The notes under the pieces were generated by a model. The model ran no database searches. It saw nothing but the letters and a program-made list of their open reading frames with translations, and had not been told where the DNA came from. Below are positions 29,339-37,919 of a stretch of 37,919 nucleotides of DNA, piece after piece (positions within the stretch are counted from its first letter, which is position 1; each line of letters opens with the position of its first letter). Location of the stretch: sequence record MK064562.1; one strand, written 5' to 3'. The position numbers and the translations under genes are program-made.

Positions 29339-29923
29339 ATGTTAGTATGCATACCTGTTGGATGGGTATCTTATACTGAACCACTTCTCAACACTGTAAA
29401 GTGGGCAAATGAGGGTAAATTCAAATTCGATTTCGCCATATCAAACCGCGTAGACTTAAATAGAAGTGTATGCATATCTAAAGCGAAACTGTTAAAGGAA
29501 GACCTAATAATGATAGACTCAGATATAAACGTATTAAACCCACCATTACAGTTAAAAGAAATATTAAAAGAAGATGAACGGGAAGCCGATATCGTATTGG
29601 GGATAGCAGTAAGCCACCTGGGAGTTTTAATAGACCCATTACCGCCTAAGGACAAAGACCTATACGAAATAAATTGGGGATCATTATCATTCGTTTACAT
29701 ACCGTTCAAGACATTAAGAAAACTGAAGCACATAGCTAAATACCCGCAAAATATAAACATGTACATGACGTACAAACCCTACACATCAGAAGACGTTGAA
29801 TTCATAAGGAGATTAAAAAAGAAAGGGTTCAAGGTTATGGCTGACAAGAGGATAGCGTTAAACCACTTTAAACTCGTACCACTGCGTTACATGTCCCTTG
29901 AGTTCGAAGTACAAACAAAATGA
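29339..29923 (+). CDS. GT-A (GT2-like) glycosyltransferase, paralog of 9440-10048
   Basis: AISNRVDLNRS, MIDSD, WGSL, SEDVEF, LNH. Confidence 0.85.
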   Translation: MLVCIPVGWVSYTEPLLNTVKWANEGKFKFDFAISNRVDLNRSVCISKAKLLKEDLIMIDSDINVLNPPLQLKEILKEDEREADIVLGIAVSHLGVLIDPLPPKDKDLYEINWGSLSFVYIPFKTLRKLKHIAKYPQNINMYMTYKPYTSEDVEFIRRLKKKGFKVMADKRIALNHFKLVPLRYMSLEFEVQTK

Positions 29924-31401
29924 AATATTTTATCCGCGAGCTTTTCACCCAGTACATCACGTATAATATCACGTTTAGAACATAAATTATACCTAGTAAC
30001 ACCACTCCTGAATAGTTTGTACGCCCTCATCCTACCTATATACGGTATATCTATAAGTCTAGCTATTTCCCTAACGTTTTCTAAAGGTATGCCGTAGCGT
30101 AAAGCCAAACTTATGTCATCATACCTGTCATCCTTAAATAAAGCCATAATGTGAGCCTTATAACTAGCCTCTTGAAGTAATTTATACTCACCGTACCCTA
30201 TCTTATCAAGGTTGATAGCCCTTTTGAACAACCCGTATAACTCCCTATCACTCATTACACCGAAAGCATTACACTCCTCGGCAACGTCCAAGCTTGAAGG
30301 TCTCATTAAATAAGACAAGACACACAGTCTGTAATCATCAGAATCTATACGATAATAATCAAAGTCCATGATCCTCTTGGCGTCAACGGGGTGGACAAGG
30401 TGATAAGCAATACTCTTCAATAACTTGTGGTCACATATACCGTATTTCTTACATATATACTCAGTATCTCCGCCTATCATCTTCGCGAAATCAATGTCAT
30501 ATTCAGTAGGAGTAAACTTAGCGGGGTCACTTAAATTACGTACGTCAAATGTAACATATATAACACCTTTACCACGTCTACCGACCCTACCAGCGAACTG
30601 GATAAATGAAGTCTTATCAAGGTACCTATTTGACGTAAATATGCCGTAGTCAAAATGGTAATCAACACCGTAGTTAAGTGCTGTAGTAGTACATATAACC
30701 TTGATCTCACCTAGCTCAAGCAAACGTGACACTTTTTCTCTATCGCTAGCACTCATTTGACTGTTATAATAAGCTACACCCTTCCTAAGTAATTGACCCA
30801 AGACCGGGTCATCGGTGTCAACGTCAACACCGTCCATGAAAAAGTCAGCAAGCTTAAGGCACATTGTCCTCGTTAATTCCGTTGAATGAACGTAAATGAA
30901 ACCATACTTACCCGGATCCACATACTTACGCCAATCATCCACCTTGATTATCTCGTATTGGCTACCGTTCTCCCCTAAATCAATTACATCATCAAACTTA
31001 ACTGAAATATCAACAGGCGTAGCACTGATGAAATAACGCCTATACCCGGTCGTATTAGCAATTGAAGAGTAAATAACATGAGAAAATAACTTATTAGCTA
31101 TAAGACTATATTCATCAAAAATTATAACGTCATTGTGAGTAGCACTTGAAGGGTTATCATGAAGAGATAAAAATTGGTTAAACTGGTTATAAGTGAAAAC
31201 GTATATCTTGTACGTCTTGTCAAAATTATTACCCACAATATCTCCGTAAAGTTGACTATAACGTTGATATAATTGTATCGCTAAACTCCTTAAAGGAACA
31301 AGATGAAAAACGCGGTGATATCTAGATACGAAATCACCGGCTTTACTTATCATCAAACGTGTTTTACCGCTTCCCGTTTTCCCCTTTACAAGTATATCCA
31401 T
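29887..31401 (-). CDS. Superfamily 2 helicase, Ski2/Hel308(Hjm)-like
   Basis: GKTGSGKT, DEYS, ISATP, TTALNYGVD, QFAGRVGRRG, C-terminal HhH IPYIGRMRAYKL. Confidence 0.92.
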   Translation of the reverse strand: MDILVKGKTGSGKTRLMISKAGDFVSRYHRVFHLVPLRSLAIQLYQRYSQLYGDIVGNNFDKTYKIYVFTYNQFNQFLSLHDNPSSATHNDVIIFDEYSLIANKLFSHVIYSSIANTTGYRRYFISATPVDISVKFDDVIDLGENGSQYEIIKVDDWRKYVDPGKYGFIYVHSTELTRTMCLKLADFFMDGVDVDTDDPVLGQLLRKGVAYYNSQMSASDREKVSRLLELGEIKVICTTTALNYGVDYHFDYGIFTSNRYLDKTSFIQFAGRVGRRGKGVIYVTFDVRNLSDPAKFTPTEYDIDFAKMIGGDTEYICKKYGICDHKLLKSIAYHLVHPVDAKRIMDFDYYRIDSDDYRLCVLSYLMRPSSLDVAEECNAFGVMSDRELYGLFKRAINLDKIGYGEYKLLQEASYKAHIMALFKDDRYDDISLALRYGIPLENVREIARLIDIPYIGRMRAYKLFRSGVTRYNLCSKRDIIRDVLGEKLADKIFHFVCTSNSRDM

Positions 31402-31466
31402 ATAACATAAGTTTACGATAATACCCTTTTATTTTTTACGGTTAATAAGAAAATAACACGTAACAG

Positions 31467-31482
31467 AAAACCTTTTAAATGA
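31467..31482 (+). promoter_or_regulatory. BRE/TATA of the replication module
   Basis: GAAAACC-TTTTAAAT about 30 nt upstream of ATG 31512. Confidence 0.55.
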
Positions 31483-31511
31483 AACCAACAAGTTGTTTTA
31501 TAGGGGAAAAA

Positions 31512-31931
31512 ATGTCTGAAGAGGAAAACCAAGAAGAAGAGTTAACCCAAGAAGAATTAGAGGAAAAACAACAGGTAGAGGAAGACATAGTACTGGACGA
31601 ATCCAAAATAAAAGAAATCAGTGAAGGCATACCGGCAAAAGTGGTAAGTATAAAAAAAGGTAGATTACTTGATTTGATAGGAGAAGTAAGGAATACTGAT
31701 AGACTATCGGAAAAAGCGTTGGACTGGATAAAAGCACAAGGTGAAGAACCGTACCTATTAATAACATGTGACGTGGAAGGCTCACAAAAGAAGTTCCTAG
31801 TCCATTACACATGGTCTAAAAACTCAACGCTCTACAAAATGGTCAAGAAGTACAAGAGAATAGCTGTAGGCACTGAAATATTAGTAAAGTTCAACCCGGA
31901 AGCAATGAGATACCAAATCGTAACGGATTGA
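31512..31931 (+). CDS. Putative OB-fold ssDNA-binding protein with acidic N-terminus
   Basis: EEE-rich tail; AKVVSI..PYLLITCDV..SKNSTLYK..VGTEILVKF strand pattern. Confidence 0.55.
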   Translation: MSEEENQEEELTQEELEEKQQVEEDIVLDESKIKEISEGIPAKVVSIKKGRLLDLIGEVRNTDRLSEKALDWIKAQGEEPYLLITCDVEGSQKKFLVHYTWSKNSTLYKMVKKYKRIAVGTEILVKFNPEAMRYQIVTD

Positions 31932-32239
31932 TAGATATGGGCAGAAAAACGGAACCTGCCCGTATCGTTAACTACATCAATAAGAGTTTACCTAAACGAG
32001 TTAAGGTAATTGATTTTTTTGATAATATCCGCACACGTCTCGAGGAAATCATAACGTTCAACTTGGATCACGGAGCAAACCCAATCACTTTTTATTCAAT
32101 CCAACAAATTTTCGCTTATTATAGAGAAGTAGCAATAGCGTCACTCTCAAGACAAGTACCAACACCGGAAGCCGAGAAAATCGTAGATGACATAGTACAA
32201 AGAGAACTAAACGAACTCTTTAACAAATATTACAAGTAG
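31928..32239 (+). CDS. Hypothetical helical protein
   Basis: 103 aa. Confidence 0.75.
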   Translation: MIDMGRKTEPARIVNYINKSLPKRVKVIDFFDNIRTRLEEIITFNLDHGANPITFYSIQQIFAYYREVAIASLSRQVPTPEAEKIVDDIVQRELNELFNKYYK

Positions 32240-32246
32240 TAATAAG

Positions 32247-32798
32247 GTGAACAAAATGAAAGAAGATCAACTTACGATTGAACTACCTTTCGAATTCGTA
32301 CTCTATAACGGGTATTCAAAACATGCCTTAAAGAATTATAAGGGTGAAACTATGCCAAGCATAGGGATAACGAATAGGTACATGTGTAAAATACACAAAC
32401 GTATCGAGTACATGATATTTCTTGATATAGATAAAAAAGTCAAATTAAAACAATTAATAAAATTTGTAAAAAAAAGACGGGCTATGATAACGAGAACAAA
32501 ATACGGTTATCACATAATAATAGTAACACATGAAAAATCACAATATAGAAACGAAATAGATACGACAAGACTAGCATTAAAAATGATAAATAAAAAAATA
32601 CCGGTTGATGTGGGTCATATATTAACGTGCATGAACAACAACCGATTCATATTGAGAATCTACGGAAAATACAAGGACAACCCATACGTTAAAATAGTGT
32701 ATAAAAAAGATGACCCGATCTTGAACGATATTGCGAAATTATATGAGGTGACAAAATGTCAAGAAAAATCACTATTATTATTCCAAAAAAATTTATGA
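32247..32798 (+). CDS. Putative minimal archaeo-eukaryotic primase (AEP) family protein
   Basis: IFLDID (motif I), TKYGYHII (motif II), VD..FILRI..K (motif III region). Confidence 0.6.
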   Translation: MNKMKEDQLTIELPFEFVLYNGYSKHALKNYKGETMPSIGITNRYMCKIHKRIEYMIFLDIDKKVKLKQLIKFVKKRRAMITRTKYGYHIIIVTHEKSQYRNEIDTTRLALKMINKKIPVDVGHILTCMNNNRFILRIYGKYKDNPYVKIVYKKDDPILNDIAKLYEVTKCQEKSLLLFQKNL

Positions 32799-33427
32799 AG
32801 GTGTTAGGCATGAAGTACACAAAATCCGCATATTTACCTTTTATGATCACGTTCGGGGTAAATCTACCCGAAGATGAATTCGTGAAAACGGAAATAATAG
32901 AAAGAAGAATAGAATACATTAGCACAATTGATAGAGCAAAAAAACTAATCGAAGAGAAAACATTAGGAAAACCCATAAATACCTATCATTTAGATTTAGG
33001 TCTAAGAATAACACAAAAAAACATAAACACAAATGAGATAAGTTTCAAAAACACAACATGCGATTACACAAAAGTAGAAAAAGAAGAATATACTAAAATA
33101 TTGAGGACAGCGTACATTGAAGACGCAGTAACAAAAGCCGTACCAAAAATAAACAACAAAAAAGCCTTCGCGTACGGGTACACGTTACTCTGTTACCTCG
33201 AAAAAGACACAGAACTAAAATTCCTTAACTCATACATTGAAGCAATAGAATTTTTCAGAAAACTACATACTTATTATGCATATAAAAGAATAATGAGATA
33301 CGAACCGAACGACCAAAAACTAAAAGAAATGGTAAACGACATGAAAAAACTGTTACCACAAAACGAACCACAAAGTAAAAAAGAAGAAATAAGAAAAGAA
33401 TTAGAAGATTTGTATATAGAATTATAG
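32756..33427 (+). CDS. Hypothetical protein
   Basis: 223 aa. Confidence 0.8.
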   Translation: MSRKITIIIPKKFMKVLGMKYTKSAYLPFMITFGVNLPEDEFVKTEIIERRIEYISTIDRAKKLIEEKTLGKPINTYHLDLGLRITQKNINTNEISFKNTTCDYTKVEKEEYTKILRTAYIEDAVTKAVPKINNKKAFAYGYTLLCYLEKDTELKFLNSYIEAIEFFRKLHTYYAYKRIMRYEPNDQKLKEMVNDMKKLLPQNEPQSKKEEIRKELEDLYIEL

Positions 33428-33436
33428 GAGATAAAA

Positions 33437-33775
33437 ATGAAATATAAAAATTGTCTCAAAAACTGTAAAACTAAAAAAATAAGGTCAAAGGAACCGTCAA
33501 TACAATTATTCCTAACACTTTACTTAAAAGTCACAGGTGAAAAACTAAAGAAATGCGAAAATTTTTGCAAAGTTTACATAGCGTTTCTTGACGTAGGAGA
33601 AATCATGTTCGGAGGAACATGGAAACGCATATGGAGAAAACAACTAAATATAAACAAAATAAAATTATTTAAATGCACACACTGCGGACAAGTATTTGAA
33701 TTGAGAACGGGAACGGAACACATCCTCGAGTTCATGTATTCAAATAAAATAATGGAAAGGGTGTTACAAGAATGA
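33437..33775 (+). CDS. Basic Zn-finger protein
   Basis: FKCTHCGQVF; additional Cys pairs. Confidence 0.7.
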   Translation: MKYKNCLKNCKTKKIRSKEPSIQLFLTLYLKVTGEKLKKCENFCKVYIAFLDVGEIMFGGTWKRIWRKQLNINKIKLFKCTHCGQVFELRTGTEHILEFMYSNKIMERVLQE

Positions 33776-34353
33776 AACTAGAAGAATTAAAACAATTGGT
33801 AGAAGAAGAGAAAAAGAAACCCCATAACAAGGAAGTAAGAGTAACACGTGCAGTAACATGCCCGACGTTACAAATAAAGGAATACTATGGAATAAATATG
33901 GGAAAACTAAGACACCAGATAATAGAAGAAAAATTAAAAAGCAAAGGGTTAGAGACGGAAGTTGAAATCGCACTAACAATTGATAACGTGCTTATAACAG
34001 GTCACGTAGACGCCCTAGACCTAAATAACTTAACAGTATACGAAATAAAACCCTCAAGAATTTACGACAATTACATAAGACAACTGTCAATGTACGTAAC
34101 AATCCTAAGAAAACTCACGGGACTAAATTTTACAGGAAAATTTATAATATATGTAGGAGAAGAAGTATACGAACTAGTACCACCATTCCTTGACACGACT
34201 ATCCTCGAGACAGTACTAGAAGTACTTCAAGAAGAAACAACAATAAAAGGAGAATATTGCACACTATGCATACACGATAAAAAATGTGATAAAAAGAGGG
34301 AATGGAAAAGAAAGATGGGGTTTGAAATAGCTGAAATAACCAAATTATACTAA
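33772..34353 (+). CDS. cas4: Cas4-like (PD-(D/E)xK, Fe-S) nuclease
   Basis: TCP, G..RH, E, ITGHVDAL, YEIK, QLSMY, C-terminal CTLC.....C. Confidence 0.88.
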   Translation: MKLEELKQLVEEEKKKPHNKEVRVTRAVTCPTLQIKEYYGINMGKLRHQIIEEKLKSKGLETEVEIALTIDNVLITGHVDALDLNNLTVYEIKPSRIYDNYIRQLSMYVTILRKLTGLNFTGKFIIYVGEEVYELVPPFLDTTILETVLEVLQEETTIKGEYCTLCIHDKKCDKKREWKRKMGFEIAEITKLY

Positions 34354-36743: not shown

Positions 36744-37739
36744 TCAAATATAACTTTCACATGTATCGTGTTCACGTAAACACTTTTTTATGTTCATTAA
36801 ATCAAAGTCAACCATCTTATGTACAAGCTCCTTAAATTTAGTTTTGGGTTTCCACCCTAGCTTTTGTTCCGCTTTTGAATAATCTCCAACCAGTTTTTCA
36901 ATATCCAAGGGACGATAAAACTTCTCATCCATATATACGTAATGCCACCATTTCAAACCGACATAATCAAATGCTTCCTTAACGAAATCTAAAACCATAT
37001 GGCTCTCCCCGGTGGCAATAACATAATCATCCGGCTCCTTTTGTTGCATCATTAAGTAGATAGCCTCAGTGTATTCAGGGGCATAACCCCAGTCCCTCTC
37101 ATACGCTAAACGACCTAATAATAACTCTTTCTGTAACCCGTGAACAATCTTAGCCACACCTATGGTAATCTTTCTCGTAACGAAATCCGAACCCCTTAAC
37201 TCAGACTCATGATTAAAGAGGATTCCATTAACGCAAAACATGTTATAAGCTTTCCTATACATCTTAACGAGATGATATGAAGCAAGTTTACTTATACCGT
37301 AAGGGCTGACGGGATTAAAATTAGTTTGCTCATTACATTTACTATCACAGTTCCCGTACATCTCACTTGAACCCGCAAAGTAGAATTTTATCCCTTTATC
37401 ATATTGTCTGATAGCCTCCAATAAATTAAGCGTTGAAATGGTATTAGTATCAAAAGTAACTTGAGGGTTATTAAAACTGACATGAACATGTGATTGTCCT
37501 GCTAAATGATAAACTTCATCCGGATCTGCAGTTTCAATTATATTCCTTAACGCGATGGAATCCGTAACGTCTGCGGTTATAATGTTCACACGGTCAACAA
37601 TACCAAGGTATTTCAATCTCCAAAGGTTACTCACACTTGTCCTTCTTGCGATACCGTATACGGTATAACCCTTATCCAAGAGTTGTTTAGCTAAAAAACT
37701 ACCGTCTTGACCGGTAATACCAGTAATTAACGCTTTCAT
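36744..37739 (-). CDS. gmd: GDP-mannose 4,6-dehydratase
   Basis: ALITGITGQDG, LAGQSHV, SSEMYG, YGISK, GILFNHES, FVTRKIT, RDWG. Confidence 0.97.
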   Translation of the reverse strand: MKALITGITGQDGSFLAKQLLDKGYTVYGIARRTSVSNLWRLKYLGIVDRVNIITADVTDSIALRNIIETADPDEVYHLAGQSHVHVSFNNPQVTFDTNTISTLNLLEAIRQYDKGIKFYFAGSSEMYGNCDSKCNEQTNFNPVSPYGISKLASYHLVKMYRKAYNMFCVNGILFNHESELRGSDFVTRKITIGVAKIVHGLQKELLLGRLAYERDWGYAPEYTEAIYLMMQQKEPDDYVIATGESHMVLDFVKEAFDYVGLKWWHYVYMDEKFYRPLDIEKLVGDYSKAEQKLGWKPKTKFKELVHKMVDFDLMNIKKCLREHDTCESYI

Positions 37740-37785: not shown

Positions 37786-37919
37786 GGTTTTTTTCGGGCA
37801 TAAATGTGGAAGATACGGGGGGTTGGTATAGAAAAAATAAGGGGTGGAATTCGCGTGAAAAAAACGTGGGGTGGCGTAAAATGGTCGCGAAAAATACGTG
37901 CGTAAAAGTGAAGAAAATG
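37786..37919 (-). repeat. Right inverted terminal repeat (window ends inside it)
   Basis: Reverse complement of 175-308. Confidence 0.97.

Follow-up and report, generated by a model that had tools for sequence, protein, structure and literature searches.

Replication of the linear genomes of filamentous archaeal viruses is still poorly understood. The DNA studied here, the 37,919-nt record MK064562.1 (the window), is the near-complete genome of a hot-spring virus of this kind, Sulfolobales Beppu filamentous phage 1 (SBFV1), classified as Alphalipothrixvirus beppuense in the Lipothrixviridae. The original prediction had noted that no DNA polymerase or HUH Rep protein can be recognised in the window, and none was found either by Pfam in 30 of the larger open reading frames (ORFs) or in the annotation given in the paper on Sulfolobus filamentous virus 1 (SFV1), which is 99.5% identical to SBFV1 over the region of the putative replication module. 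A primase was likewise missing from the Pfam matches of these 30 ORFs, in agreement with the published annotation. It had been proposed that a 183-aa ORF in this module encodes a minimal archaeo-eukaryotic primase (AEP). The ORF is gp56 of the record (Table 1) read from a GTG start at 32247; residues D60, D62, and H89 of the longer version are D57, D59, and H86 in the numbering of the record, which is used below. We found the proposal well supported by fold, by conservation of the catalytic residues, and by profile alignment at the level of single motifs. Very probably, the gp56 protein belongs to the AEP superfamily as a much reduced and highly divergent member.

Fold and conserved residues of gp56

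Relatives of gp56 were found by an exhaustive profile search, which gave ten true homologs of 153-230 aa with 27-45% identity; a word-indexed search returned gp56 itself only. An eleventh profile match (P0011, 744 aa) was a false positive caused by tetratricopeptide repeats and was excluded. Scanning IMG/VR with the family alignment retrieved SBFV2 only, and no relatives of gp56 or of the neighboring Cas4 were detected by tblastn in rudiviruses or in other lipothrixvirus genera. In the resulting alignment of 11 members (gp56 and its ten relatives) seven columns are invariant (F12, Y17, D57, D59, G84, H86, and D153), four of which are the DxD and GxH residues D57, D59, G84, and H86. Conservation of at least 90% was observed for D118, R134, G137, K138, H92, C44, and H47. 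The motifs originally read from the single sequence (hhDhD, TxxGxH, and D..LR) are thus present and are not a product of chance, with D57, D59, G84, and H86 invariant and D118 and R134 conserved in at least 90% of the members. Judged by the alignment, the catalytic residue set is intact and selectively maintained.

The invariant DxD and GxH residues occupy the positions of AEP motifs I and II in the predicted secondary structure. Motif I, an hhhDxD/E signature that closes a beta-strand, is represented by D57 and D59, which end strand 49-58; motif II, an s/T..G.H signature that opens a beta-strand, is represented by the invariant G84 and H86 together with a conserved T/S81 at the start of strand 85-93. 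The candidate for motif III is D118, which follows helix 96-112, with R134 downstream. The same order and similar spacing are seen in the PrimPol of cyanophage S-2L: Y63, E85, D87, T112, K115, H118, D146, and R157 of that enzyme have been described as conserved across AEPs (PMC8065100), and gp56 has D57, D59, T81, K82, H86, D118, and R134.

No sequence match to entries of the PDB was obtained for gp56, as both phmmer and a profile hmmsearch returned noise only. The AlphaFold (AF2) model of the protein (pLDDT 88.5) was compared with 48,161 PDB representatives, and all 12 of the best matches were AEP enzymes. AEPs were also retrieved with the ESM Atlas model (pTM 0.79) and with the BFVD model, which agrees with the AF2 model at TM 0.93. 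The N-terminal alpha/beta unit and the RRM-like sheet that make up the AEP catalytic fold are both present in the model. We therefore assign the AEP fold to gp56 with high confidence. The structural ranking of the matches cannot separate primases from LigD-type polymerases.

Sequence profiles give the same picture at the level of the motifs. Reference domains for hhalign were taken from bacterial genomes and comprised 14 Prim-Pol (PF09250) and 3 LigD Prim-Pol (PF21686) sequences. A single local alignment was obtained between the gp56 family and Prim-Pol. It spans motifs I and II in register, with a score of 24.9 and a P of 0.0054, and pairs 'l.f.DID' with 'l.VlDvD' and 'TKyG.H' with 'T..G.H'. 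Scores of 9.6-16.1 were obtained for eight controls that were reversed or unrelated, and of 8.4-17.3 for 42 further unrelated controls. The register between motifs I and II was reproduced by five of the 14 Prim-Pol sequences when used singly. Motif III (D118, R134) was not aligned to Prim-Pol by hhalign, and with LigD motif II alone was aligned.

Known families of the superfamily do not accommodate gp56. The curated AEP models PF01896, PF09250, PF16793, PF21686, and PF24387 gave no significant match to it, and the best score of any family member against these models was E 0.024. Because no curated AEP hidden Markov model (HMM) reaches gp56, fold and motifs place the protein in the superfamily, yet in none of its described families. 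Compared with Prim-Pol, gp56 lies below the Pfam threshold and has an extra helix (119-128) between motif III and the next strand; Prim-Pols of the PF09250 or pRN1 ORF904 type are usually fused to PriCT and helicase domains, whereas in SBFV1 any such functions would be encoded by separate genes. The RepB' primase of plasmid RSF1010 (PDB 3h20/3h25) has a helix bundle in the same chain (288 aa), a domain that is missing from gp56 (180 aa); the two are not detectably similar in sequence, and RepB_primase (PF16793) gave no match. PF24387 ('archaeo-eukaryotic primase 1D-like') covers small bacterial and phage proteins, in clusters that are mostly bacterial, and is together with HP0184 (2atz) among the nearest known counterparts of gp56. 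Its HMM detects neither gp55 of SFV1 nor gp56 of SBFV1 and matched nothing in SFV1 or in 406 bacterial genomes, and we found no characterised function of PF24387-type proteins that could be transferred. The gp56 family is a new, unannotated AEP family of SFV1-type alphalipothrixviruses and their metagenomic relatives. The protein is labeled 'uncharacterized' in UniProt/BFVD, SFV1-type viruses are not mentioned in the 2018 AEP census, and no publication that connects lipothrixviruses with an AEP came to light.

Two further features of the family were observed. Residues C44, H47, and H92 are near-invariant, lie away from the catalytic motifs, and are lost together in P0012, the most divergent member; they would fit a small structural metal site. 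Another member, P0009, is wholly divergent past motif II and lacks D118 and R134, and may be a frameshifted or decayed copy.

The putative replication module and its conservation

ORF calling recovered every ORF that had been listed for the module, and these correspond to gp53-gp59 of MK064562.1 (Table 1). Genes are tightly packed, with overlaps of 43 nt between gp56 and gp57 and 4 nt between gp58 and gp59. Four of the products (gp54, gp55, gp56, and gp57) had zero matches in Pfam, PHROG, and NCBIfam, and the HHpred table of the SFV1 paper is blank for their counterparts, ORFs 53-56.

Table 1. Genes and intergenic region of the putative SBFV1 replication module (coordinates in MK064562.1)
Feature	Coordinates	Strand	Description
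gp53	29887-31401	-	Superfamily 2 (SF2) helicase of Ski2/Hel308 type, divergent from the gp54-gp59 operon
Intergenic region	31402-31478		77 bp, A/T-rich, between gp53 and gp54
gp54	31479-31931	+	Acidic N-terminal arm and C-terminal domain of ~100 aa
gp55	31937-32239	+	Conserved 100-aa protein
gp56	32256-32798	+	180 aa; candidate primase or primase-polymerase, very probably a minimal stand-alone catalytic core of the AEP superfamily
gp57	32756-33427	+	223 aa; single-chain tandem ribbon-helix-helix (TraY-like) DNA-binding protein, overlapping gp56
gp58	33437-33775	+	Zinc-finger protein
gp59	33772-34353	+	Cas4/RecB-family nuclease with four-Cys cluster

The order of the module is retained at 30-45% identity on independent metagenomic contigs: a helicase is followed by one or two ORFs of ~130-150 aa, a gp55-like protein of ~100 aa, the AEP, a gp57-like protein of 180-280 aa, the zinc finger, and usually Cas4. 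The most divergent context (L012) consists only of the AEP followed by a gp57-like gene. On L010 (4128-5550) the position of Cas4 is taken by two unrelated ORFs of 247 and 197 aa; Cas4 is therefore not an obligatory component of the module.

The immediate neighbor of gp56 is a tandem ribbon-helix-helix (RHH) protein. Two beta-alpha-alpha units in one chain form a pseudo-dimer in gp57, as in TraY of the F-plasmid relaxosome, and a C-terminal helical extension of ~70 aa is added. The two proteins share the fold type and no sequence similarity; the partner of TraY is an HUH relaxase, whereas that of gp57 would be an AEP. A PDB-sequence profile search with the gp57 family gave noise only. With a tandem RHH fold, a PriL-, PriX-, or PriCT-like subunit is ruled out for gp57, and the likely architecture of the replication machine changes accordingly. 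A predicted complex of gp56 and gp57 scored 0.03 against a mark of 0.32, a value that speaks neither for nor against binding.

The assignments of gp58 and gp59 made in the original prediction held. C6, C44, C80, C83, and H95 of gp58 are invariant across five contexts, in keeping with a zinc finger; zinc-ribbon HMMs match weakly, and HHpred gave P=93 to 2nb9 for the counterpart in the SFV1 paper. The Cas4 identity of gp59 is indicated by PHROG 1706 (E 5.9e-10) and by TIGR00372 cas4 (4.4e-7; 29.9 bits, under the cut-off of 65), and the SFV1 counterpart matched 4r5q with HHpred P=99.6. When residues were compared over SBFV1, SBFV2, and L004, gp59 showed conservation of the RecB-type nuclease residues D80, E91 and K93 (ExK), and Q104 and Y108 (QxxxY), together with the four Fe-S cysteines C30, C163, C166, and C172.

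A Hel308-like helicase divergent from the operon had also been described. Its orientation, SF2 core, and Hel308-like character were confirmed in gp53, but it is not Hel308 proper. The protein matches ResIII (2.1e-11), DEAD (5.9e-10), and Helicase_C (6.5e-7) in Pfam, and PHROG 16 (DNA helicase, 2.2e-20) and 6819 ('Holliday junction branch migration helicase', 3.8e-18). In NCBIfam it matches Hel308 weakly (2e-9), with residues 443-494 on Hel308 positions 645-697 in the C-terminal domain; this score of 36 bits is far below the equivalog cut-off of 1200, and apart from the last ~50 residues only pieces of the core are matched. The C-terminus is shared with the 'branch migration helicase' of SIFV/AFV betalipothrixviruses, and gp53-like helicases are encoded on contigs L004, L005, L006, L008, L010, and L011. 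A TATA-like CTTTTAAA is located at 31469-31476, and the intergenic region likely holds putative promoters for gp53 and for the gp54-gp59 operon. A second SF2 helicase was identified in gp02 (364-2217; ResIII 9.5e-26, with an XPB/ERCC3-like C-terminal match), which adjoins the left inverted terminal repeat (ITR) on its inner side; SBFV1 thus has two helicases, one near each genome end.

The start of gp54 is probably ATG 31512 (M12) and the annotated ATG at 31479 too far upstream, because all homologs begin at the equivalent of M12; the TATA-like element lies upstream of this start. The protein had been called acidic-tailed and OB-like. An acidic stretch does exist, but it is N-terminal (about residues 13-41) and is not a tail. 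An OB-like fold was not established: in the Atlas model (pLDDT 0.64) all TM-scores were below 0.5, the matches were spread over small beta-barrel, OB, and TOBE-like proteins and included TOBE, proteasomal-ATPase OB, and glycine-zipper proteins, and the feature score to the phi29 single-stranded DNA-binding protein was just 0.75. Proteins at the gp54 position are of two unrelated types among the contigs, and the type on L004, L010, and L011 is unrelated to gp54 of SBFV1 and accompanied by an extra ORF of ~140 aa. The 103-aa version of gp55 in the original prediction uses an upstream TTG start. With a mean column identity of 43%, gp55 is the best-conserved small ORF of the module; T5, I10, P19, I39, N42, I50, S54, and I58 are invariant and the N-terminus carries a K/R-T-D-P-A-R-I motif. 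PDB-sequence searches gave noise only for gp55 and for the gp54 family, and the profiles of gp54, gp55, and gp57 showed no similarity by hhalign to the regions downstream of (flanking) Prim-Pol domains.

Outside the module, gp66 (36744-37739) was identified as a GDP-mannose 4,6-dehydratase. Its nearest cellular relatives in the genome collection are ~50% identical and are found in Methanosarcinales, Haladaptatus, and diverse bacteria; since they are not from Sulfolobales, acquisition from outside the host lineage is suggested.

Proposed role of gp56 and competing explanations

Priming of replication is the leading reading of the role of gp56, and we consider it fairly probable that the protein is an active primase or polymerase. 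The best explanation as a whole, to which we give somewhat better than even odds, is that gp56 is an AEP core that primes and/or extends on viral DNA with partners in trans. Two divalent metals would be bound, most likely by D57, D59, and D118, and the incoming nucleotide by T81, K82, H86, and R134. The enzyme would make and/or extend short primers, which host polymerase and clamp would then elongate. Because no helix-bundle (PriCT/PriL), zinc, or helicase domain is fused to gp56, template recognition and loading would probably be provided in trans by gp57, gp58, and gp55. The Hel308-like helicase would unwind and the Cas4 nuclease would resect DNA; the participation of these two in recombination-dependent steps, as suggested in the original prediction, is proposed by analogy only. 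A comparable operon is gp17-gp18-gp19 of SIRV2 (ssDNA binding, annealing, and Cas4 nuclease), which is likewise conserved in Ligamenvirales, ends in a Cas4-like nuclease, and has been linked to a function in replication or repair (PMC6105669, citing Guo et al. 2015); the AEP, tandem RHH, and zinc finger of the SFV1-type operon have not been reported for SIRV2. Catalytic activity, the choice between priming and extension, the partners, and the site of action are all points that we infer. Site-specific priming in the manner of RepB' would be purely conjectural for gp56.

The main rival, which we consider unlikely, keeps gp56 as an active AEP and places it in recombination or repair: gap-filling or end-processing of the LigD-Pol or PrimPol kind, combined with resection by Cas4 and branch migration by the helicase, would restore termini or restart forks. 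In 30 of the larger ORFs, Pfam revealed neither a Ku nor a ligase partner; the usual position of Cas4 is occupied by other ORFs in L010, and in the most divergent context nothing but the AEP-RHH pair is left. Pairing with sequence-specific DNA binders (RHH, zinc finger) also suits site-specific initiation better. It is quite improbable that the AEP-derived fold has lost nucleic-acid synthesis and serves in DNA binding or regulation, or in some other phosphoryl transfer in the acidic pocket. All of the metal- and nucleotide-binding residues are kept over 27-45% identity, which would be hard to explain without catalysis, and the isolated 190-residue AEP domain of S-2L PrimPol (6zp9), of similar size, still polymerises (PMC8065100).

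Some observations weigh against any AEP assignment: the significance values are all modest, HUH transposases and the palm domains of reverse transcriptases or Y-family polymerases appear lower in the lists of structure matches, and rudiviruses initiate replication via an HUH Rep (PMC5062984). The resemblance could then be spurious, arising from a wrong model or coincidental motifs in another RRM-like or palm-like fold such as an HUH Rep-type nuclease. We regard this as very improbable, given that the 12 top structure matches are exclusively AEPs, that three structure predictions made independently agree with one another and with a language-model feature search, and that the profile alignment reproduces the motif register above all 50 controls. 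The family shows neither an HUH motif nor a pattern of conserved catalytic Tyr; its invariant residues form the Asp-x-Asp and Gly-x-His pairs seen in AEPs. The HUH Rep reading in particular was rejected on motif content and fold ranking. A role of the module against host CRISPR adaptation or defence, suggested by the combination of viral Cas4 with a Prim-Pol and by the existence of CRISPR-associated Prim-Pols (CAPP), is hardly credible. CAPP ranks under the AEPs of replication and repair, the genome contains neither Cas1 nor Cas2, and a helicase with DNA-binding proteins is typical of replication modules; nucleases of the Cas4 type are common among archaeal viruses, where they are tied to replication or repair.

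Genome termini and related proteins in other viruses

MK064562.1 is registered as a partial genome with both ends incomplete, and the SFV1 sequence reaches 29 nt beyond its left end. An inverted repeat of 134 nt (175-308 vs 37786-37919, 99% complementary) is present in the record. Of the six copies of the TAGAAC-type repeat AGAAC(A/T)(T/C)C (AGAACWYC) in the window, four lie within its first 93 nt and only two elsewhere. In the complete SFV1 genome, eight of ten copies are found in mirrored ITR arrays (30-122 and 37190-37282), four per ITR with a spacing of 24-31 bp, and the extreme tip carries an inverted half-site, ATGTTC-GT-TAGAACAT. Such an iteron-like array could be bound, or used as an origin, by a sequence-specific DNA binder. 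Priming at the ITRs, a part of the original prediction, is conjectural, and the array would be a possible target for it. Cumulative GC skew (2-kb profile) climbs to a maximum near 18-20 kb, at the genome centre, and then drops, which is compatible with replication converging from both termini but is confounded by a switch of gene orientation in the same region.

Similar proteins appear in other crenarchaeal viruses. The gp56 model matched uncharacterised proteins of ~200-234 aa in BFVD, namely Q6ZYJ3 of Pyrobaculum spherical virus (PSV; Foldseek E 4.6e-3, TM 0.49), A0A6M3VX95 of PSV2, and A0A140F3J6 of PFV1. The landmarks ALK.Y..lPvIG, IDWD, G..WH, and GILR are shared between gp56 and PSV gp10 (NC_005872, 6815-7519), with a weak hhalign P of 0.063. 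Small AEPs may thus be hidden in several crenarchaeal virus families (Globuloviridae, Tristromaviridae). In a bolder and, in our view, rather unlikely scheme, the module would form a split, origin-targeted mini-primosome resembling a relaxosome, in which gp57 and gp58 place gp56 on the TAGAAC-type arrays of the ITRs for strand displacement from both ends, and related small AEPs would be the missing initiators of other crenarchaeal virus families that seem to have no replication proteins, Globuloviridae (PSV gp10) and Tristromaviridae (PFV1).

A global survey in 2016 listed the lipothrixviruses AFV1 and AFV2 as lacking typical replication proteins, which were considered possibly "highly diverged", and the proteins behind the strand-displacement replication of AFV1 were not identified (PMC4889955). 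As a candidate, gp56 is the first DNA-synthesis enzyme proposed for lipothrixvirus-type viruses, and it adds one of the smallest cores to the AEP superfamily. With named active-site residues, a DNA-binding neighbor, and a candidate ITR array, its predicted role becomes accessible to feasible experiments in the cultivable system of SFV1 and S. shibatae.

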